Below, one piece after another: positions 21,067 to 61,640 of a DNA stretch of 64,000 bases (positions are counted from its first letter, which is position 1; each line of letters starts with the position of its first letter). The stretch is taken from positions 124,001-188,000 of IMG/VR virus record IMGVR_UViG_3300043399_000297; one strand, given 5' to 3'. A program made the translations under genes and the position numbers. The notes beneath the pieces are model-generated. The model worked only from the letters and a program-made list of their open reading frames with translations, had not been told where the DNA came from and ran no database searches.

Positions 21067-21110
21067 ATGTTTTTATTAACATAGCATATAATTATTTCTT
21101 ACCAATAAGA

Positions 21111-21190
21111 TAAATACTTTCAAGCTCAAGAGAGTTTATGCAGTCCCCGCTGCGTAGAGGCTAGAACCCTCTTATATAAGGAGAAAACAA
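21111..21190 (+). promoter_or_regulatory. late promoter plus structured 5' leader
   Basis: TAAATA at 21111-21116; stems AAGCTC/GAGTTT, TATGCAG/CTGCGTA and GAGG/CCTC precede the SD. Confidence 0.5.
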
Positions 21191-22459
21191 ATGGGACGCC
21201 CACTAAAGATTGCTAAAGCACAAGCAGTCATTACAATCACAAACACAACTAACTCAACTGATCTAGTTACAACTAATGCAAACTTCACTAATCTTGGTAT
21301 TATTGCAGGTATGCCGTTTGTAACTGCATCGAACATCGGCGGGCTTGTCGCCGGAACACTATATTGGATTCTTAAGGTAGTAAACTCAGGAAATAACAGC
21401 ACTTTCACTGTTTCTGAAACTCCGTTAAATGCTAATGTAAATAGCACACCCAAAGATTTGTCAACTGCATCAGGCACTGTTTCAACTACAGTTGGTCCAG
21501 TTGATGCGTATTTCAATAATCCAAACGGTCCTCAATGGCCAGCAACAAATGCCAATACTTACTCAGTAGTAGGCGGTAATACATCAATTTATGGCAAACA
21601 AGTACTTTGCAATGTTGCGCTAGGTCAAACAGGTTCAGGTGTAATCTATTCATACACTACGAGCCCTGTAATTGGTGGTCTAGGAACAGATTTTGCCAAC
21701 ACTAGCGGTACAGGCACTGTTATTCAGTATGTGCAAGCAAATGGTGTTCCAGCTACTCTTGGATATGTAAGCAGCAATGCTCAGCCAAACATTGAGATTT
21801 CAAATGCAACTGCAACTGGTAATTTCTTGACAACAGTAGGTAATGCATTAACTTTGAGTTTAAATCTTCCGGTTACTCTAACAGCCGATATCGGTGGTCT
21901 AACAGCAGGAACTACTTATTTCGTTAAAACAACTCCAAATGCAACTGCATTTTCAGTGTCATTAACGCCGGGCGGAGCTAATGTTGGATTAAGCAGCGAA
22001 GATGCAACTTCTTACGCAAATCAGGACTTGGTCACTTTCGCAGCTAACGCAGCAGCAGCTACTTCAGCCGCTGCTTATATCTTTGCAACACCAGAAGCAG
22101 GATATATTGTTCGTCAGAAGGGCAAGCAGAAGTATCTTGTTAAGGGAGCCACATCAGGTCTCGTTGGACAGTGCTACACTGCAAACGTTGCAAATACTGC
22201 AATGCTTCCAAACACTATGACTATCACTGCAACCTATGCCAACAGTGCAACAGTTAAGGTTCAGAGTTTGAGCGATCACACTGCTGAATTGTTCACTGCA
22301 ACATCAGGTGGACCTGCAACAAGCACTGACAACATTAACAATGCTGCCCCTGCTTTTGCAACGTTCAACACCGCTGTTGCTGCTAACTCGACTCAGTTGT
22401 ATGATTTCAGTTATGGCAACGCACAACCTTACCCGATCGTACAAATCGGCAACGCATAA
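21191..22459 (+). CDS. virion structural protein
   Basis: Late promoter, strong SD, two copies of a GG..AGT.Y(W/F)(I/V)...F.VS.T beta module. Confidence 0.7.
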   Translation: MGRPLKIAKAQAVITITNTTNSTDLVTTNANFTNLGIIAGMPFVTASNIGGLVAGTLYWILKVVNSGNNSTFTVSETPLNANVNSTPKDLSTASGTVSTTVGPVDAYFNNPNGPQWPATNANTYSVVGGNTSIYGKQVLCNVALGQTGSGVIYSYTTSPVIGGLGTDFANTSGTGTVIQYVQANGVPATLGYVSSNAQPNIEISNATATGNFLTTVGNALTLSLNLPVTLTADIGGLTAGTTYFVKTTPNATAFSVSLTPGGANVGLSSEDATSYANQDLVTFAANAAAATSAAAYIFATPEAGYIVRQKGKQKYLVKGATSGLVGQCYTANVANTAMLPNTMTITATYANSATVKVQSLSDHTAELFTATSGGPATSTDNINNAAPAFATFNTAVAANSTQLYDFSYGNAQPYPIVQIGNA

Positions 22460-28214: not shown

Positions 28215-29468
28215 ATGGCTCGTCGTGCAATCGTTACTAAGGTTCGCAAGCCCAAGAAGACCACAGTTCGTGTTGGTAAGAAGGGTGTTGCCCTCGCTTC
28301 GTCTGGTAATACACTTACGAAGGATTTTCGCCCTAAGGATAGTGATGTTCTGCGGTATGGTCCTGAACCCAGCTTCACTGACAGCCAGCCCATTGAGGAA
28401 CAGCGTCAGTCTATTCTTTCCGACGCATATAATTGGTATTCGCGTTTCTGCACTCACAAGGATTCCAAGCTGTTCCTAATTCAGTATCTTGAAGATACTA
28501 ATATGAGCAAGGATGTTGTCAAGTTAGTGCGTAAGGCCCCTGACAATCGTATGGTTACGACTGCTGGTTGGGCTGCTCGTTGCGCTACTCGTGGTCTTGT
28601 TCTGACCGAGAAGCAGAAGAATTATATTCAGGCTTGTGTTGATCGTCTAGTTGACTTTGCTAAGGCTGGTGTTAAGGACGAGCCTGCCGAAGGCGAAGAA
28701 ACTGTTGTTGAAAAGCCCAAGCGCACTGTCAACATTCAGGAAGTGATGCGTGAAAAGGCTGATGAAGCACTGAGTGATGTTGAAGCACTGTTTGATGAAT
28801 TCATCACTGCCGGTTGCCCCAAGGACTTTTCTGTAGACAAGAAGATCATTGGTTTTCTGACTAGCCGCAATGTTCTCCCCCAACACATTGCCAACGCTAT
28901 CAAGCGTTATACTAGCCTGCTTAACGAGTATAATGAAGCAGTTGCTGGTAACGATGACCAAGTCAAGGAAGCATATTCCAGCTATGGTAAGATGCAGTTG
29001 CGCTATACCGTCAAGTTTATTGAAGATATCATTGCAGAACTGAATGGTTATATCGGTCTTAAGCAGGCTACGAAGAAGGTTCGTGCTAAGAAGGTTGTTC
29101 CGGTTGAGAAGGTCGTGGCGAAGGTAAAGTTCCAAAAAACCAACGATGCACTTGGTATCACAAGTGTCAGTCCCGTCAAGCTGCATCAGTGCGCCGAGGC
29201 GTTCCTGTATGATACTGCTAAGCGCAAGATCATTTGGTTGGTTGCTGACGAGTATAGTAAGTGCTTGATTGTCAAGGGCAATGCAGTAATTGGGTTTGAC
29301 AAGAAAAAGAGTATGAGCAAGACTGTTAGGAAACCGGAAGAGTTCCTTAAGGGAATGATGAGCGCAAGTCGCCCGAACACTCGCAAGATGATTGACGATA
29401 TCAAGGCAGTTGCAGCGATCCCGAATGGTCGATTCAATGAGAATATTGTTATCCTTAAGGTTTGGTGA
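28215..29468 (+). CDS. hypothetical basic phage protein (417 aa)
   Basis: Strong SD, biased codon usage, C-terminal KTVRKPEE...NGRFNEN..ILK motif. Confidence 0.8.
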   Translation: MARRAIVTKVRKPKKTTVRVGKKGVALASSGNTLTKDFRPKDSDVLRYGPEPSFTDSQPIEEQRQSILSDAYNWYSRFCTHKDSKLFLIQYLEDTNMSKDVVKLVRKAPDNRMVTTAGWAARCATRGLVLTEKQKNYIQACVDRLVDFAKAGVKDEPAEGEETVVEKPKRTVNIQEVMREKADEALSDVEALFDEFITAGCPKDFSVDKKIIGFLTSRNVLPQHIANAIKRYTSLLNEYNEAVAGNDDQVKEAYSSYGKMQLRYTVKFIEDIIAELNGYIGLKQATKKVRAKKVVPVEKVVAKVKFQKTNDALGITSVSPVKLHQCAEAFLYDTAKRKIIWLVADEYSKCLIVKGNAVIGFDKKKSMSKTVRKPEEFLKGMMSASRPNTRKMIDDIKAVAAIPNGRFNENIVILKVW

Positions 29469-30072
29469 TCGTCTTGCACGAATCCCCGTGCCATCTGACG
29501 AAATTACCCTTGTTAACTGTCTTCCCGCAGTGTTCGCAAGTTAATTGATACTCTGGTTTGCACATTGGATTATTTTTCCCGGTCTTGTTAGCGTTTAGTG
29601 CCGACAGGGCCGGGTTTTTCTTCCCACGCATTGCACTCGGTTTCCCATACATTGGATTCTTCTCGCCTAAGTTTTCCGAGTTGCGTCTACTAAGTTCGGG
29701 GTTCTTGGTACCGAACATAGGATGTTTTTCTCCCTGGCGTTTTCTATTTCTCTCTGCTGTATCAGGGCGAGACTTCCCAAAACAAGGATGATTTACCCCT
29801 GCTTCGGAACCGCCTGTTTCCGGTATACGGTTGGCCCACTCATCGCTTTCTACAACGTTCCATAGTTCGGAATAATATACGCCCCAGGTTGTCAGTTCTT
29901 CTTTAGTTTGGCACTCTTTCAATATCACTGTAGTTACATCATTTCCGTGTTCAAGGATATGAGGTATCCAATCAATGCCGGAACCTTTATATTTGAATGG
30001 ATCTTTTTCTGTTTTACCTAGGTATTGTAGACCGGTTTTGTTGTGGGTCTTCTTATACAAATAAATAGTCAT
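29455..30072 (-). CDS. free-standing GIY-YIG-type (Seg-like) homing endonuclease with NUMOD3-like repeats and a C-terminal zinc knuckle
   Basis: IYLY...YLGKT..Y.GSG..W...WAN..PETG; NPMYGK/HPMFG repeats; CEHC...RWH...C. Confidence 0.8.
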   Translation of the reverse strand: MTIYLYKKTHNKTGLQYLGKTEKDPFKYKGSGIDWIPHILEHGNDVTTVILKECQTKEELTTWGVYYSELWNVVESDEWANRIPETGGSEAGVNHPCFGKSRPDTAERNRKRQGEKHPMFGTKNPELSRRNSENLGEKNPMYGKPSAMRGKKNPALSALNANKTGKNNPMCKPEYQLTCEHCGKTVNKGNFVRWHGDSCKTITKP

Positions 30073-30140
30073 TGCTGATACTCCGCTATAGTGTTAGAGT
30101 GGTTAGATGCGTCAACATCGTGAACCACACTTTTATTTAG
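30073..30140 (-). promoter_or_regulatory. late promoter plus conserved two-hairpin leader of an endonuclease gene, copy 1
   Basis: Homologous to 33040-33107 and 61575-61640, with compensatory base changes. Confidence 0.8.
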
Positions 30141-31746: not shown

Positions 31747-32397
31747 ATGACAAATAAAATTATCTCCATCTCCGGATTGATAGGATCAGGAAAAGACACC
31801 GCCGCCGACTATCTCTGCACGGTACATGGTTTCAAGCGTATGAGCTTTGGTGCCAGTCTCAAGGACGCAGTAGCAGTCATTTTTAATTGGAATCGCGAAC
31901 TACTAGAAGGGTCAACTAAGACTAGCCGAGAATGGCGAGAAGAAGTTGACACTTGGTGGGCAGATCGTTTAGGCATTCCCAATCTAACTCCTCGTTGGGT
32001 ACTACAGCAATGGGGAACAGAAGTTGCTCGTAAGGGTTTCCATGATGAAATCTGGGTTGCGAGTGTAGAGAACAAACTTCTCAACAATAAAGATGATATC
32101 GTAATCACTGATTGTAGATTCCCCAACGAACTTACTGCTATCAAGAACGCAGGTGGTATCACAATGCGAACTCATAGAGGCAAGGCTCCCAATTGGTTAG
32201 ATATCGCTGCAATTATAAACACTACTACGGACGAAGCCGTAAAGATTCACTGTCTAGAGCAAATTGAAAAGTTCAACGTTCATGCTAGCGAGTATTCTAG
32301 CGTTGGTCTAGCGTATGATTATCATCTAGACAACAATAAGACGGTAACAGAATTGCACGAACAAATTGAGAGTATTTTACGCCAATCTACAATTTGA
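31747..32397 (+). CDS. deoxynucleoside monophosphate kinase (T4 gp1-like)
   Basis: GLIGSGKDT P-loop, TPRWVLQQWGTE, ITDCRFPNE, HASE. Confidence 0.92.
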   Translation: MTNKIISISGLIGSGKDTAADYLCTVHGFKRMSFGASLKDAVAVIFNWNRELLEGSTKTSREWREEVDTWWADRLGIPNLTPRWVLQQWGTEVARKGFHDEIWVASVENKLLNNKDDIVITDCRFPNELTAIKNAGGITMRTHRGKAPNWLDIAAIINTTTDEAVKIHCLEQIEKFNVHASEYSSVGLAYDYHLDNNKTVTELHEQIESILRQSTI

Positions 32398-33039
32398 ATT
32401 ATGCCAACGATTGAAGTTGCCCATGCCCGCTACTTTCTTATGACAGTGCGGGCATTCAAATACCGGGTCCTTTTTACCATACCTAACACTCTTTTCACCC
32501 AATTGTGAATTTCTTCTTTTCTCGTTTGATTCGGGAGTTTGAGTTTTTCCAAACATATGGTTATCAGGGCCTAATTGACAGGTCTTCATCCTAGCACTTT
32601 GATCTGGTCTTTTTCTACCAGTGAGTTTTTTACTATGCTCGGGTCTTTTTCTACCTATTTTAGGTAAGGCAGCTTTTCTCTTGTGTTCTTCTGTGTGTTT
32701 TCTACCGGCTTGTGCAATTCTAAGTTTTTCTTTAGTTTTTGCTGATCTGGGAACGCCAACCTTCCCACCAACTCCCCCGCCGGTTTCTGGAATTTTATTA
32801 GCCCATTCTGTGCTGTCTGCAACACTCCATAGCTTGCTGTAATATCTGCCCCAGTAGTTTAATTCTTCGTTGGATTGGCATTCCTTGAGGATTTCAGTAG
32901 TTACATCACACCCGTGTTCTTTGATATGCGGTACCCAATCTGTACCAGAACCCATATACTTATACGGGTCTTGGATAGTTTTTCCGAGATACTTGAATCC
33001 GGTTTTGTTGTGGGTTTTCTTGTACAAATAAATAGTCAT
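32377..33039 (-). CDS. free-standing GIY-YIG-type (Seg-like) homing endonuclease with NUMOD3-like repeats and a zinc knuckle; paralogue of 29455-30072
   Basis: MTIYLYKKTHNKTG..YLGKT N-terminus nearly identical to copy 1; CPHC...RWH..C. Confidence 0.8.
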   Translation of the reverse strand: MTIYLYKKTHNKTGFKYLGKTIQDPYKYMGSGTDWVPHIKEHGCDVTTEILKECQSNEELNYWGRYYSKLWSVADSTEWANKIPETGGGVGGKVGVPRSAKTKEKLRIAQAGRKHTEEHKRKAALPKIGRKRPEHSKKLTGRKRPDQSARMKTCQLGPDNHMFGKTQTPESNEKRRNSQLGEKSVRYGKKDPVFECPHCHKKVAGMGNFNRWHNSNCRLA

Positions 33040-33107
33040 AGCTGATACTCCTTGACAGTATTAGAGTAGTTGGGGATTGCCGTCCCGCGAACTACATCTT
33101 TATTTAT
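33040..33107 (-). promoter_or_regulatory. late promoter plus conserved two-hairpin leader, copy 2
   Basis: See copy 1; the TAAATA overlaps the stop of the 33100-33456 gene. Confidence 0.8.
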
Positions 33108-33456
33108 GCCAATCTACGAGCAAATCTCCGCGCTTCCAAGTTATCTCTTTGCGCTTCACTACCTCAACGCAATTGAGACAAATTGACCTAAGGTTAGTTA
33201 GATTGACATTAGTTAAGTCTCCGTCTATGTGGAATACAAGCATTTGCGTTGGGTAAGACGCTTTGAATCCGCAACATTCACATATTGTCTTTTTTTTGTA
33301 TCCAGCCTTCTCCCATATATAAAGTTGTGGCTTTTTCTTGGCCCTTTTCTTTCCGCAACTATCACATATACTGCGATAGTAGGTTTTGCCATTGCGGATG
33401 TAATTTATTGCGCAATAGTTCTTATTACATTCCTTGCATATGGGTCTTTTCAACAT
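33100..33456 (-). CDS. zinc-binding HNH-like protein
   Basis: Several CxxC pairs plus FHIDGDLTNVNLTNLRSICLNC. Confidence 0.7.
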   Translation of the reverse strand: MLKRPICKECNKNYCAINYIRNGKTYYRSICDSCGKKRAKKKPQLYIWEKAGYKKKTICECCGFKASYPTQMLVFHIDGDLTNVNLTNLRSICLNCVEVVKRKEITWKRGDLLVDWHK

Positions 33457-33519
33457 AACACTATTTAGTCATTTTCACCTTTAAAGGTTCCGTTAACCAC
33501 ACTTTTTTATGTTTTTTGC

Positions 33520-33595
33520 TAAATATCTCTAGAACCTTAGTAATCGTTACTAGGGCAGGTGGTAAACCTCATAATCATACGAAGGAAAAAATAAT
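33520..33595 (+). promoter_or_regulatory. late promoter plus two-hairpin leader of the tail sheath gene
   Basis: TAAATA 33520-33525; stems CCTTAGTAA/TTACTAGGG and AGGT/ACCT. Confidence 0.5.
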
Positions 33596-36500
33596 ATGGC
33601 ACTCGTTTCACCAGGTGTAGAAGTTACAATCATTGACGAATCTCAATATCTTCCAGCACCAACTAATACTATTCCATTCGTCTTGCTTGCAACTGCACAA
33701 GATAAAGCAAATCCAACTGGCACAGGCGTAGCATCAGGTACTACAGCCGCAAATGCTGGTAAGTTGTTCCAAGTAACAAGTCAGCGTGATCTTGTTGCTC
33801 TTTATGGAAACCCATTCTTCTACACAACTGCAAACGGTACTCCAATTCAGGGCTATGAACTTAATGAATATGGGCTGCTTGCTGCTTATTCTGCATTGGG
33901 TATCACAAATCGTGTATACTGCTTACGTGCAGACATTGATCTTGCAAGCTTAGTAGGACAAACTGGTAGACCAACTGGTAACCCTGCAAATGGTACATAT
34001 TGGTTAGACACTACTACATCAACTTGGGGCATTTATGAATTTGATTCAGTAACAGGAACATTTGCTCTGCAAACACCAATTGTAATTACTGATCCTGATC
34101 AAATAAGCGGAAGTTATCCCATTAACTCTTTGGGTGTAATTGGAAGTTATGCAGTAATTGCAATTCCTACATATGATTGGCCAAGCCAAACAGCCGCCGG
34201 ACAATTCTTTTATAAAAATGATGTTAATCAGTGGGTAAGAATTGGTACCGCTGAATGGTTAAACTCTTGGCCTACTGTTCAGGGCACACTAGCCCCAGGT
34301 TCTTTAACAATGAATAATGAGCTTACTATTACTTTAAGTGGTATGGCAACAGTGTCAGTATCAGTAAGTTCTTCGCCCGACAATACTGTAGCAGATTTGG
34401 TGAATCAAATCAATACATTTGCAAACGGTGGTAATTTGGGAAGTTTATTTGCTGCTTCAGTGAATGGTAAATTAGTTCTTTATTCCAGACAAACAGGCGG
34501 CGATATTACATCATCTGTTCCTTATGAGGTAACAATTGGCGGCACGGCAGGACTATTGACACAATTAGGAATTTCTGCGGGAACATATTATCAGCCTATA
34601 GTTTCTTATGGAACATCCGCTCAGCAGCCATTATGGCAACAAGGACAATCATATCCTGCACCAACTGGATCAGTTTGGATCAAGATAGGAACTGCAGGTT
34701 CAGGTTTAAATTCAGTAGTTTCTGAATTTAATTCTACTACTGCTAATTGGGTGGCAAAAACGGTATCTTACGCTACTGCTGACTGGAGCGCGATAGGCAG
34801 TCTCGATTCATCAGGTGGTAAAAATATTCCAGCAGGAACCGTATACGTACAATATGATTACGATACGAGAGTAACAGGTGGTATTATACAGAAATATCCG
34901 GCAACTCCTATCTATTATTGGGAAAGACTTGCAGAAGGCCCTACTGTAGTTACTGGGACTAACACCTCACCCTCATTCACAAATGGACCATATGATTTAT
35001 TAGTACAAATATCTGTTCCGGGAACGTCAACATTAGGCAATTATTACACGGTCGTCCTCGGCGATAACACTGATGCAGAAGATTTTGTAAATGCTTGGAA
35101 CACTGCTGCTATCCCATATACTATAGCATCTTTAACTTCGGCAGGAGCAATACAATTAACACACACGCAAGGAGGCGTGATTGTTCTAAGCGATATTCTT
35201 TGGGATACGACTGGTGTAAGTTCTGGTTTACTTGAAGAAGCCGGATTTGTACCGGGATCGACCTTAGGTGCAAAATACGGACCTGCTGTTATGACTATGC
35301 TTAATGCCGGTCAGGGCCCAAGCTATCCTGATTCTACTACAAGTGGAGTTGGATCAGGTTTCGAAATGACAATCAGAGGTCAATATCAAACTTATTATTT
35401 CGAGACAGATAACTTCGTTGATGCCGGCGGCGGATATGCAGTTGGTGACACTATAACAATCAATGGTTCATACTTAGGTGGTTCATCTGGAACAAATAAT
35501 TTGGTTGTTGCTGTTACAAGTGTAGACGCAGGAAATGGCAACGCTGTTACAGGCATTGCATACGTGTCAGGAACTGCTGCATTAACCTATCAAGTACAGT
35601 TATCAAATTGGGTAGAGTTTGATATGACTGCTAACGAGGGTTCACCTACACAGGCTCCTGATGATTTGACCAATTGGTTCTATAGTGTTGTTGATGAAGT
35701 AGACATTATGGTTAATACCACTAGCGGTTGGTATGGCTATAGAAACGTTTCATATGATAATAACGGTTTCCCCCTTCCTTCAGGTATTAATACTACTGAT
35801 CCAAACGGACCTATTGTAAGTGCAACTAAACCAACCACTCAATCAGATGGTACAGCACTTTCATACGGTGATCTTTGGATTGATACTAGTGATGTTGAAA
35901 ATTATCCAATTATTAATCGTTGGCAGTCTGTTAGCGGCGTAAATCAATGGGTAAGAATTGATAACACTGACCAAACATCATCAAAAGGTGTATTATTTGC
36001 TGACGCACGTTGGGCTACAAATGGAACTACTAATCCAGCAAACGATCCGATTCCGTCTATTGTGAGTTTGTTAACAAGCAATTACTTGGATCTTGGAGCT
36101 CCTGACGAAGATTTGTATCCAGTTGGTATGTTGTTGTTCAACACTCGACGTTCAGGATACAACGTCAAGCAATATCGTGTTAATTATTTTAACACTGATA
36201 GATTCCCTGATCAACCCATTCCTGATCAAACAGATGCTTGGGTAACTATTTCAGGCAATCAGTCAAACGGTAGTCCATATATGGGTCGTAAGGCACAGCG
36301 TGCAGTTGTAGTTAAGGCACTACGTGCAGCAATTGATACTAATAGCGCAATTCGCGACGAAGATAATCCATTCAACTTAACTGCTTGCCCTAACTATCCT
36401 GAATTGCAGCCTAATATGGTTGTTCTAAACAACGATAGAGGAAATACAGGTTTCATCGTCGGTGATACTCCAATGAGACTTCCAGATGATGCTACTGCAA

Positions 36501-37228
36501 TTCAAGCCTGGGCAACTAACGCAGCCGGAGCTACATCTACTGGCGAAGAAGGTCTTGTAACTCGTGATACATATCTCGGACTATTCTATCCATCAGGTAT
36601 CACCAGCGACTTGAATGGCAATTTAGTAGCTGTTCCTGCATCACATATGATGTTGAGAACTATTCTTAGAAACGATACTGTTGCTTATCCTTGGTTCGCA
36701 CCGGCTGGTACTCGTCGCGGTATTATTGATAACGCAACAAGTATTGGTTATATTGATAGCGCAACTGGTGAATTCCAAGTAATTAAGACTAGAATTGGTA
36801 TTCGTGATGTTCTTTACACAAATCAGATTAATCCAATGGTATTCTTTACTGGAAATGGATTATTGAATTATGGAAATAAAGTAAGCTTTAATTCACAGTC
36901 AGCACTTGATAGAATCAATGTTGCAAGACTTATTGCTTATATCCGTCGACAGTTGACAATTGCTGCAAGACCGTTCGTGTTTGAACCAAATGATGCAATT
37001 ACTCGTCAGCAGGTTACATCTGTAATTCAAACATTGTTTATTGATCTTGTTGCAAAACGTGGTATTTACGATTATCTCGTAGTTTGCGATGAATCAAATA
37101 ATACTCCGGCTCGTATCGACAGAAATGAGCTTTGGGTAGATATTGCAATTGAGCCAGTTAAGGCAATTGAGTTCATTTACATTCCGGTAAGAGTTCTCAA
37201 CACTGGCGAAATTGCAGCATTAGGTTAA
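33596..37228 (+). CDS. tail sheath protein (T4 gp18-like), 1210 aa with large internal insertions
   Basis: SPGVEV N-terminus; PWFAPAG.RRG, RINVARL, FVFEPND, P.KAIEFI. Confidence 0.95.
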   Translation: MALVSPGVEVTIIDESQYLPAPTNTIPFVLLATAQDKANPTGTGVASGTTAANAGKLFQVTSQRDLVALYGNPFFYTTANGTPIQGYELNEYGLLAAYSALGITNRVYCLRADIDLASLVGQTGRPTGNPANGTYWLDTTTSTWGIYEFDSVTGTFALQTPIVITDPDQISGSYPINSLGVIGSYAVIAIPTYDWPSQTAAGQFFYKNDVNQWVRIGTAEWLNSWPTVQGTLAPGSLTMNNELTITLSGMATVSVSVSSSPDNTVADLVNQINTFANGGNLGSLFAASVNGKLVLYSRQTGGDITSSVPYEVTIGGTAGLLTQLGISAGTYYQPIVSYGTSAQQPLWQQGQSYPAPTGSVWIKIGTAGSGLNSVVSEFNSTTANWVAKTVSYATADWSAIGSLDSSGGKNIPAGTVYVQYDYDTRVTGGIIQKYPATPIYYWERLAEGPTVVTGTNTSPSFTNGPYDLLVQISVPGTSTLGNYYTVVLGDNTDAEDFVNAWNTAAIPYTIASLTSAGAIQLTHTQGGVIVLSDILWDTTGVSSGLLEEAGFVPGSTLGAKYGPAVMTMLNAGQGPSYPDSTTSGVGSGFEMTIRGQYQTYYFETDNFVDAGGGYAVGDTITINGSYLGGSSGTNNLVVAVTSVDAGNGNAVTGIAYVSGTAALTYQVQLSNWVEFDMTANEGSPTQAPDDLTNWFYSVVDEVDIMVNTTSGWYGYRNVSYDNNGFPLPSGINTTDPNGPIVSATKPTTQSDGTALSYGDLWIDTSDVENYPIINRWQSVSGVNQWVRIDNTDQTSSKGVLFADARWATNGTTNPANDPIPSIVSLLTSNYLDLGAPDEDLYPVGMLLFNTRRSGYNVKQYRVNYFNTDRFPDQPIPDQTDAWVTISGNQSNGSPYMGRKAQRAVVVKALRAAIDTNSAIRDEDNPFNLTACPNYPELQPNMVVLNNDRGNTGFIVGDTPMRLPDDATAIQAWATNAAGATSTGEEGLVTRDTYLGLFYPSGITSDLNGNLVAVPASHMMLRTILRNDTVAYPWFAPAGTRRGIIDNATSIGYIDSATGEFQVIKTRIGIRDVLYTNQINPMVFFTGNGLLNYGNKVSFNSQSALDRINVARLIAYIRRQLTIAARPFVFEPNDAITRQQVTSVIQTLFIDLVAKRGIYDYLVVCDESNNTPARIDRNELWVDIAIEPVKAIEFIYIPVRVLNTGEIAALG

Positions 37229-59990: not shown

Positions 59991-60914
59991 GTGAAGAATC
60001 GGTTGTGGGTTGAGAAATATCGCCCATCTAAAATAGATGATTATGTGTTTGTTGACGATAGACAAAAGAACACAGTTGAGCAGTGGATCAAAGACGAGTC
60101 TATTCCCCATCTATTGCTTTCAGGCGATCCCGGCACAGGTAAAACTACATTAGCTAAGGTTCTTATCAATGAACTTAATGTAGAAGACTTTGACGTTCTA
60201 GAAATCAATGCTAGTAGAGAAAATGGCATTGACAACCTTAGAGAAAAAATCAATGGCTTTGTGCAGACTATGCCTTTCGGCAAGTTCAAGGTTGTTTTGT
60301 TAGACGAAGCTGACTATCTTACTCAGCCAGCACAGGCAGCATTGCGTAATGATATGGAAGCATATCACGAAACAGTCAGATACATTTTAACTTGTAACTA
60401 TCAGCACAAAATTATTCCTGCGTTGAAAAGTCGTTGTCACGAATTCCATATCGCAAAGCCCGATATCACGGAATACACAACTCGTGCCGCTACTGTTCTT
60501 ATAAACGAAAACATTGAGTTTGATCTAGATGACCTTGACACATATGTTCGTGCCTGTTATCCCGATCTAAGAAAGTGTTTGAATCAGTTACAGCAGAATA
60601 GCATCACTGGTTCTCTTGCCAAGCCACAGTCAACTGGTAGTGGCGAAGATGAACTATTGGTCGCTGCTACAGAATTGTTCAAGAGTGGTAAGATTCTTGA
60701 AGGTCGTCAGCAATTGTTACAATATATCAGTCTATATCCAACTCGGGTAGAAGATGTGGTAAGATGGGCATATGACAATCTTGATCTTTGGGGTAAGACT
60801 CAAGAGAGCAAAGATGCTTCAATTGTGATCATTCGCAATACGTTAGCAAACCTGCCCTTAGTAGGGATACCTGAAATAAGCATTGCGGCCATGATGGTTG
60901 AATTATGTAGCTAA
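59991..60914 (+). CDS. clamp-loader large subunit (T4 gp44 / RFC-like AAA+)
   Basis: [30 protein letters not shown]. Confidence 0.95.
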
Positions 60915-61574
60915 TTCCCAACCCTTGACTGATTTGTAATATTTTGTGCGGTTGACCAAATTATAAATATTACTGGCTGAGGCACTGATGTAATTACAGA
61001 AATCGTATTTTGTCATGGTAACTACTTCTTGAGTTTCTTTGTTTCTAAATGAATATAAAGTGTGATCATATTGGTGGTTACCGGCACCTGTTCTATTTCT
61101 ACTTCTAGTCGCTCGTACTTCCGGAGAACTCATACGCTTCTTAAACGCCTCACGACTTTTTTGGCTTTTTGCAGGGTGTCTTTCACCCAAAGACAGCATT
61201 CTCTCGGATTGCAGTGTTCGGTATTTTTCTAATTTGTTGTGACTGTTCTCGCCTGATATTCTTAGAATATGCTCTTCGGTATGCTTATATCCGCTACATC
61301 CGTCTCCACCGTCGGTGAGATTTCGTAGTATGCCGGTGTCATTATCTACTCTACCGTACCATCGTATCATCCGTCTTTCTAACGCAAACGCTCCGGTTTC
61401 GGTGAGATTTTGTTCAAGAAATACAATTCTTGAAAGGTCATCTGGAACCTTAAGTTTTCCGTGATTAGCAAACGCTCGGTTCCCGTTGCCTTTTCCTATG
61501 TAATAAGGGGTTCCTGCTTTAGCTGTAGTTGAGTCATTTTTTCGTAGATATGCGTAGACATAATAAATATTCAT
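60903..61574 (-). CDS. free-standing GIY-YIG-type homing endonuclease (different clade from the other two)
   Basis: YYVYAYLR...PYYIGKG.GNRA...E...I..YGR...[10 protein letters not shown]; helical repeats; KGW C-terminal DNA-binding motif. Confidence 0.8.
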
Positions 61575-61640
61575 GCTGATTCTCCTTAACAGAATTAGAG
61601 TGAGTAGGAATGCCAGTTCCGTGACTCACAACTATTTATA
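61575..61640 (-). promoter_or_regulatory. late promoter (TATAAATA) plus conserved two-hairpin leader, copy 3
   Basis: See copy 1. Confidence 0.8.

Follow-up and report, generated by a model that had tools for sequence, protein, structure and literature searches.

Hairpins preceding homing endonuclease genes in a T4-like phage are conserved on the antisense strand and may encode a small antisense RNA

Results

Three homing endonuclease genes share a two-hairpin leader

We analyzed a 64,000-nucleotide stretch (the window), positions 124,001 to 188,000 of the 244,022-bp IMG/VR phage record IMGVR_UViG_3300043399_000297. The record comes from a freshwater metagenome and represents a distant T4-like myovirus, with a tail sheath, tail tube, clamp loader, dNMP kinase, MazG, PhoH, and a gp55 homologue. 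An ORF on the − strand at 32377–33039 (copy 2) encodes a 220-aa Seg-like homing endonuclease of the GIY-YIG type that starts M-T-I-Y. Its assignment rests on the N-terminus that it shares with the ORF of copy 1, of which it is taken to be a paralogue, and which gave tblastn hits to annotated GIY-YIG homing endonucleases of T4-like phages at 26–31% identity. In the mRNA sense, the region upstream of the copy 2 ORF contains a late-promoter-like box (CATAAATA), 5 nt of spacer, hairpin 1 with a 6-bp outer stem, a small internal loop, a 4-bp inner stem and a 6-nt loop, 1 nt, hairpin 2 with eight positions per arm and a 7-nt loop, and 2 nt before the AUG. The Shine-Dalgarno (SD) sequence is split between the loop (GG) and the 3′ arm (AG) of hairpin 2.

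On the + strand, the complement of this region begins with an ATAAATA late-promoter box at 33028–33034, inside codons 2–4 of the endonuclease ORF, with a predicted antisense start at about 33040. Hairpin 2′, the complement of the SD and of the SD-AUG spacer, occupies 33042–33064, with 8 bp between 33042–33049 and 33057–33064 and the loop CCTTGAC. Hairpin 1′ occupies 33066–33095, and consists of the 6-bp outer stem, one extra G-Y pair flanked by two bulged G, the 4-bp inner stem, and a variable 6-nt loop. It is followed by the U-rich tail ATCTTTATTTAT at 33096–33107, of which 33101–33107 is the complement of the mRNA's ATAAATA box on the − strand. The predicted mRNA +1 is 33095, the first base of hairpin 1. 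The interval singled out in the initial annotation, 33040–33107, runs exactly from the predicted antisense start to the end of the mRNA's promoter box.

The same architecture precedes two other − strand endonuclease ORFs in the window, with start codons at 30072 and 61574. Copy 1 precedes the ORF at 29455–30072 (205 aa, Seg-like, with a NUMOD3 motif) and spans 30061–30140, with the + strand box at 30061–30067, hairpin 2′ at 30075–30097, hairpin 1′ at 30099–30128, and a variant mRNA box, CTAAATA, at 30134–30140 on the − strand. Copy 3 precedes the ORF at 60903–61574 (223 aa, GIY-YIG-like) and spans 61563–61640, with the + strand box at 61563–61569, hairpin 2′ at 61576–61598, hairpin 1′ at 61600–61629, and the mRNA box TATAAATA at 61633–61640 on the − strand. 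A covariance model finds seven copies in the complete record at E ≤ 4.5e-12, all in one orientation and on the minority strand. The ORFs downstream of these copies belong to different families, and include GIY-YIG-like ORFs, HNH ORFs (PF13392), and one decayed 30-codon remnant.

The stems pair fully on the strand antisense to the endonuclease gene

The initial annotation reported that the ATG-proximal stems of the three copies pair fully on the + strand, with a conserved G·U wobble, and that the same positions become A·C mismatches on the endonuclease mRNA. This observation is correct. The stems are CTGATACT/AGTGTTAG at 30075–30097, CTGATACT/AGTATTAG at 33042–33064, and CTGATTCT/AGAATTAG at 61576–61598, each fully paired on the + strand with G·U at pair 3 and, in copy 1, a second wobble at pair 5. 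This is not chance: the pattern has three matches, against none in 100 shuffles. All six copies that were folded individually give the same two-hairpin minimum free energy (MFE) structure on the + strand (−16.9 to −19.4 kcal/mol, z −1.9 to −3.5), whereas the mRNA strand gives −11 to −14.3 kcal/mol (z −0.2 to −1.5) and does not form hairpin 2 consistently.

To enlarge the alignment, we scanned IMG/VR with a pattern that fixed pairs 1, 2, 4, 7, and 8 of hairpin 2, left pairs 3, 5, and 6 free, and did not constrain hairpin 1 at all. The scan returned at least 118 loci, which gave 107 distinct copies. In mRNA-sense terms, the outer stem of hairpin 1 in these copies has 629 Watson-Crick pairs, 12 A·C (G·U on the antisense strand), 1 G·U, and no other mismatch. 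In hairpin 2, pair 3 is A·C in 107 of 107 copies, pair 5 is C·A in 60, Watson-Crick in 43, and A·A in 4, and pair 6 covaries (G-C, A-U, U-A) with 2 A·C and no G·U. The extra pair inside the internal loop of hairpin 1 reads G-C in 72, A·C in 23, A-U in 12, and G·U in 0; a further tally of this pair gave GC 35, GU 11, and AU 8 on the antisense strand. A second, independent scan of JGI metagenome contigs gave at least 93 new distinct copies, with 22, 4, 15, 59, and 1 antisense G·U (101 in total) and no sense G·U in the variable pairs. Together, the two collections hold at least about 200 distinct copies. Pair 3 is A·C on the mRNA in 200 of 200, although both positions were left free in the search, and outside this invariant pair the count is about 198 antisense G·U to 1 sense G·U. 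Only 15 diverged copies found by the covariance model alone speak to the positions fixed in the pattern. They keep the G·U at pair 3 and add two more antisense G·U at pair 4 and flipped pairs at positions 7 and 8. In a scan of prokaryote genomes, only 4 of 12 pattern hits are real by the model.

On 53 distinct gapless copies, 99.9% of cells are standard pairs on the antisense strand compared with 90.4% on the sense strand, and for hairpin 2 the figures are 99.8% and 79.2%. Ten pairs show double-sided changes, with covariation in 9 of the 10 stem pairs of hairpin 1, and none of 500 shuffles reaches the observed covariation score. Unguided RNAalifold finds 19 pairs (−22.4 kcal/mol) on the antisense strand and 13 pairs (−14.5 kcal/mol) on the sense strand, where hairpin 2 shrinks to 3 bp. 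The antisense fold is the more stable one in 108 of 108 copies (−18.7 versus −12.8 kcal/mol), with hairpin 2 accounting for most of the gap (−6.0 versus −2.2 kcal/mol) and hairpin 1 contributing little (−9.9 versus −9.2 kcal/mol). Because the copies are related by descent, counts of cells overstate the number of independent events. Even so, antisense G·U occurs at four positions of the hairpin 1 outer stem, in the inner stem, at the extra pair, and at pairs 3–6 of hairpin 2, in many different stem sequences and in two separate collections. An excess of G·U on the mRNA strand in a larger alignment had been named in advance as an outcome that would count against an antisense fold, and the opposite was found.

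A mutation bias of the genome strand does not account for the G·U excess, which follows the orientation of the endonuclease gene. The gene opposes most neighboring genes in 61 loci and is co-oriented with them in 17, and the wobbles remain on the strand antisense to the endonuclease in both groups (65 to 1 and 14 to 0, respectively). The loop of hairpin 1 is not conserved in sequence, and a YUNR U-turn motif is present in only 30 of 107 sense loops and 18 of 107 antisense loops, which is not convincing.

A late-promoter box is embedded in codons 2–4 of the endonuclease genes

Nearly all of the ORFs downstream of the element, whatever their family, begin M-x-I-Y, with codons 2–4 reading NNT-ATT-TAT. 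This constraint is on the DNA rather than the protein. Codon 2 encodes 11 different amino acids, yet its third base is T in 86 of 95 ORFs, compared with 33% elsewhere in the same ORFs (p = 1e-31), Ile at codon 3 is ATT in 65 of 68, compared with 40% elsewhere (p = 1e-22), and Tyr at codon 4 is TAT in 67 of 73. T-ATT-TAT is the reverse complement of ATAAATA, which behaves as the late promoter in this genome: of 52 boxes on the + strand, 39 are intergenic in a genome that is 95% coding, 43 have a + strand ORF start within 150 nt, and the motif is strongly avoided in coding sequence on both strands. NATAAATA is the documented late promoter of T4-like cyanophages (PMC2984593). The record contains a gp55 homologue; a search with T4 gp45 found nothing, but the record is only 71% complete and we place no weight on this result.

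The antisense box is exact in 81 of 107 copies and lies 6–7 nt before the first base of hairpin 2′ in 74 of 107, while the sense box is exact in 89 of 107 and lies mostly 5 nt before the first base of hairpin 1. In T4 the box occupies −13 to −6 (PMC2988020), and by this rule each RNA would start at the base of a hairpin, with the two RNAs overlapping over the whole leader of about 62 nt, including the SD. We considered whether the two boxes, ATAAATA and TATTTAT, pair with each other in read-through RNA, as in the logic of I-TevI, but none of 52 deviations in one box is mirrored in the other. They are therefore two copies of one consensus and not the arms of an RNA helix. The antisense box is kept whether or not a co-oriented gene follows it (50 of 67 versus 20 of 31). 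No σ70-like promoter was called at the element.

On the + strand, hairpin 1′ is followed 2 nt later by a U-rich tract in 99 of 108 copies, against a background of 0.116. However, this tract is simply the complement of the mRNA's promoter box, and late promoters are also AT-rich just downstream of the box (PMC2988020), so it is not independent evidence for termination. The stem of hairpin 1′ is interrupted by bulges, and a simple terminator scan does not call the site. On the − strand the U criterion is satisfied in only 27 of 108 copies, with the U-run about 9 nt away.

The element matches no Rfam 15 family, either at the gathering threshold in the window or at E ≤ 10 on four loci holding copies. 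Megablast of the region, blastn of one copy, and tblastn of a 422-aa ORF of unknown function at 21191–22459, which follows the freshwater-2 motif, gave nothing useful against 50,697 phage records. Among five cultured T4-like phages, the covariance model found no copy in S-PM2, S-CRM01, HTVC008M, or T4, and gave only a 17.5-bit hit (E 0.08) in Aeh1 that we take as chance. A search for sequencing runs holding this DNA returned five DNA metagenome runs, two of which may be the source sample, and no RNA run.

Discussion

A model with two convergent late promoters

The best-supported model, which we hold at roughly even confidence, is that the element is a compact regulatory module that travels with free-standing homing endonuclease genes (GIY-YIG, HNH, and others) in an uncultured lineage of T4-like phages. 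In this model, two late promoters read by a gp55-type sigma factor face each other about 75 bp apart, with two hairpins between them. The − strand promoter would make the endonuclease mRNA, whose leader starts at the first base of hairpin 1 and carries the SD in a deliberately weak hairpin 2. The + strand promoter, written into codons 2–4, would start an RNA at the base of hairpin 2′ that is complementary to the whole leader up to the base before the AUG, folds into two stable hairpins, and probably ends at hairpin 1′ plus the U-rich complement of the mRNA's promoter box, giving a cis-antisense RNA of about 65–70 nt. Selection would maintain the helices on this antisense RNA, so that wobbles are G·U there and A·C on the mRNA. 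The wobble would cost the antisense hairpin little but break the mirrored hairpin on the mRNA, which would otherwise bury the SD-AUG spacer, and this would also explain why neither base of pair 3 is ever changed to make a Watson-Crick pair. By analogy with RNA-OUT/RNA-IN of IS10 and sar of phage P22, pairing of the two RNAs, together with convergent transcription, would hold endonuclease expression down, although with both promoters of the late class the antisense RNA would damp expression rather than switch it. Our analysis establishes the structure, its covariation and strand bias, the two promoter boxes with their spacing, and the DNA-level constraint on the codons, whereas firing of the + strand box, the position of the RNA's 3′ end, and repression of the endonuclease are inferred from sequence alone.

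The interpretation in the initial annotation is partly supported. Its core inference, that the functional fold may belong to the + strand, is strongly supported by the expanded alignment. Its proposed source for that RNA, read-through from upstream + strand genes with no visible terminator, is not needed and is weaker. The alternative that it offered, that the A·C mismatch is a selected weak point of an SD-sequestering stem, is not a rival to the model and is probably the other half of the same design.

Alternative explanations

The main rival, which is possible but less likely, is that the + strand box is an outward-facing promoter that repairs polarity by driving phage genes downstream of the insertion, with the hairpins serving as a 5′-terminal stabilizing leader of a long mRNA. 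Embedded promoters for neighboring genes are found in T4 seg and mob genes (PMC2988022). In 67 of 98 loci the next gene is co-oriented with the + strand RNA (median gap 124 nt), and only 17 of those 67 have a box of their own; of 37 loci with a co-oriented gene within 150 nt, that gene lacks its own box in 27, and there the + promoter could serve it instead. In the window, the tail-sheath gene at 33596 has no perfect box, and the nearest upstream + strand box is the one at 33028. However, the box is kept almost as often where the next gene points the other way, the resulting leaders of about 190 nt are far longer than this phage's usual 20–40 nt from box to ATG, a U-rich tract follows hairpin 1′ in most copies, and this reading does not explain why pair 3 must stay G·U/A·C. 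The two functions could coexist. Read-through RNA that crosses the endonuclease gene as antisense, with the hairpins acting on it as, for example, a terminator or processing site, appears unlikely. It would fit the opposite orientation of the endonuclease gene to both neighbors in 46 of 78 loci with both flanks present, the minority-strand location of all seven copies in this genome, and the terminator-like appearance of hairpin 1′ with its U-tract. Yet in the 17 loci where the endonuclease gene is co-oriented with most neighboring genes, no read-through antisense RNA is expected and the bias persists, a dedicated promoter box is held in place by the codon constraint, and two terminator-like sites on the + strand inside the antisense endonuclease gene, at 32519–32547 and 32604–32631, may block read-through before it reaches the element.

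Regulation on the mRNA alone, as in T-even phages, is also unlikely. In that case hairpin 1 would be a 5′ stabilizer, hairpin 2 an SD stem with a selected A·C weak point, and TATTTAT after the AUG would either pair with the promoter box in read-through transcripts or aid translation. Ribosome-binding-site (RBS) hairpins combined with late promoters are the known control of I-TevI, segB, and mobE (PMC2988022), hairpins carrying TATAAATA were reported upstream of metagenomic endonuclease genes (PMC2677866), and the predicted mRNA +1 falls on the first base of hairpin 1. However, in hairpin 1, which has no reason to be weak, wobbles on the mRNA strand are 34 A·C against 1 G·U, hairpin 2 on the mRNA averages only −2.2 kcal/mol, with pair 3 mismatched in all copies and pair 5 in more than half, and the promoter lies upstream of both hairpins so that late transcripts do not lose an arm. 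The absence of covariation between the boxes further argues against this reading. A DNA-level element, in which the hairpins extrude from single-stranded + strand DNA and serve as a recombination, homing, or protein-binding site of the mobile cassette, cannot be excluded but is very unlikely, and nothing requires it. The sharing of the module by unrelated endonuclease families is expected of a cassette boundary, and G·T is tolerated in DNA and more stable there than A·C, but both hairpins start exactly at the predicted transcription starts of two promoter boxes, the hairpin 1 loop is not conserved, and no protein or process is known that would read only one DNA strand here.

Relationship to known systems

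The proposed arrangement resembles RNA-OUT/RNA-IN of IS10/Tn10 and the sar RNA of phage P22 that acts against ant. In these systems, face-to-face promoters lie a few tens of base pairs apart and a small, stably folded antisense RNA is complementary to the 5′ end and RBS of the mRNA of a potentially harmful mobile-element or phage gene. Here, both promoters are of the T4 late type, the predicted overlap covers the whole leader but apparently not the AUG, there are two hairpins rather than one, the target is a homing endonuclease, and expression and repression are inferred. The CfrI antisense RNA of cyanophage S-PM2 also runs opposite a homing endonuclease gene in a T4-like phage and is co-expressed with it (PMC2984593, citing Millard et al, 2010). 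It is about 225 nt, links the endonuclease gene to psbA, and has no known function, and because our model finds nothing in S-PM2 the two are not homologous in sequence or structure. The RBS-sequestering hairpins of I-TevI, I-TevII, I-TevIII, segB, and Aeh1 mobE (PMC2988022) likewise combine a late promoter with an RNA hairpin that touches the SD just upstream of the ORF, but there a very stable hairpin forms on the mRNA and the late promoter sits so that late transcripts lose one arm, whereas here the mRNA hairpin is weak, the promoter lies upstream of both hairpins, and selection acts on the opposite strand.

Conserved hairpins with TATAAATA were described in the 5′ UTRs of free-standing, phage-like endonuclease genes of more than one family in marine metagenomic 'fractured genes', with two complementary motifs and a T4-type late-promoter box (Dassa et al, 2009; PMC2677866). 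These may be the same or a related element; the authors read the hairpin as an mRNA translational control and report no antisense promoter and no strand bias. PeSLs of T4-like phages (PMC4122927, PMC2839356) are also short, repeated cassettes of a promoter plus a stem-loop that are scattered through genomes and move with variable genes, but they carry early (sigma-70-type) promoters and are not tied to endonucleases, and the 2014 description (PMC4122927) mentions neither late promoters nor antisense transcripts. Neither of the two papers on endonuclease hairpins (PMC2988022, PMC2677866) describes an antisense promoter written into the first codons or a strand bias of the helices, and the review account of CfrI (PMC2984593) mentions neither. 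Cis-antisense RNA is itself a known kind of control.

Hairpin 2 is nearly identical in all copies while the loop of hairpin 1 is copy-specific, and a more speculative and doubtful possibility is that the module encodes a family of small phage antisense RNAs that act both in cis and in trans across all endonuclease genes of a genome and of co-infecting relatives. This would amount to a copy-number-sensing or 'immunity' network among selfish endonucleases, and would be a natural case in which an invariant G·U/A·C asymmetry gives opposite stabilities to two complementary transcripts of a single palindrome.

Homing endonucleases are the main selfish elements of T4-like phages, and their known controls are promoter choice, autorepression, and mRNA hairpins. 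The module described here is widespread, and a conserved antisense-RNA module shared by unrelated endonuclease families would add a new layer of control. It would provide a clean natural example of strand-specific RNA selection that can be read from counts of G·U against A·C, and would define a candidate structured RNA family that matches no Rfam family. If the model is right, it also explains why these proteins begin M-x-I-Y: a promoter is written into the codons.

ATAAATA boxes and predicted transcription signals around the module

Across the whole phage record, ATAAATA is strongly purged from coding sequence on both strands. About 61 copies per strand are expected from composition, whereas 52 were observed on the + strand, 39 of them intergenic, and 20 on the - strand. 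Of the 13 + strand boxes that lie in coding sequence, six are the ones inside endonuclease start regions. A late-promoter box at window position 21110 on the + strand is followed directly by a freshwater-2 RNA motif (RF02980, 63.2 bits; 21110-21193 with the box), which runs into the start of an ORF at 21191-22459. This ORF encodes 422 amino acids and has no Pfam or PHROG match and no match in cultured phages. The motif may be a leader element of a highly expressed late, and possibly structural, gene.

Two terminator-like sites, each consisting of a hairpin plus a T-run, lie on the + strand at 32519-32547 and 32604-32631, just after the dNMP kinase gene and inside the antisense of endonuclease copy 2. 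The 3' ends of the kinase gene and the endonuclease ORF overlap by 21 nt (32377-32397), and such convergent 3' overlaps are common in the other loci. Just upstream of copy 2, on the same strand as the endonuclease, is a 118-aa HNH-like ORF (33100-33456, - strand; phrog_10822, E 3.6e-5) that has no hairpin module of its own and whose stop codon (33100-33102) overlaps the mRNA promoter box of copy 2. On the + strand, the tail-sheath gene (33596-37228) has no perfect ATAAATA box of its own in the region before it (33457-33595), only CTAAATAT about 70 nt upstream. The nearest upstream + strand box is the one embedded in endonuclease copy 2.

Distribution of the module and its endonuclease genes

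True copies of the module, scoring 55-78 bits, also occur on contigs binned into MAGs of freshwater bacteria: a 148-kb contig of a Haliscomenobacter sp. MAG (L136), contigs from two Bacteroidetes bins (L133 and L141), and a contig from a Nitrosomonadales bin (L140). These are probably mis-binned phage contigs. The three Bacteroidota assignments may hint at the host. When all copies are compared, the first and last loop bases at the loop-closing position of hairpin 1 alternate mainly between C..A (41) and U..G (18) in the mRNA sense, a wobble-to-wobble alternation that looks the same on either strand.

The GIY-YIG-like and the HNH endonucleases of this phage (window 29455-30072 and 32377-33039, and positions 851-1498 and 899-1498 of two further loci, L004 and L006, respectively) share NUMOD3-like repeats and a C-terminal Cys/His motif, roughly C-x-H-C-G-K ... 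G-N-F/Y-x-R-W/F-H-G-D-x-C-K. Therefore, unrelated nuclease domains appear to be joined to one DNA-binding module. At copy 5 (positions 1406-1498 of locus L005, at ~207,900 in the phage record), both promoter boxes and both hairpins are kept, with the + strand box 10 nt rather than 6-7 nt from hairpin 2', but the endonuclease ORF is cut to 30 codons. Here the regulatory module has outlived the gene.
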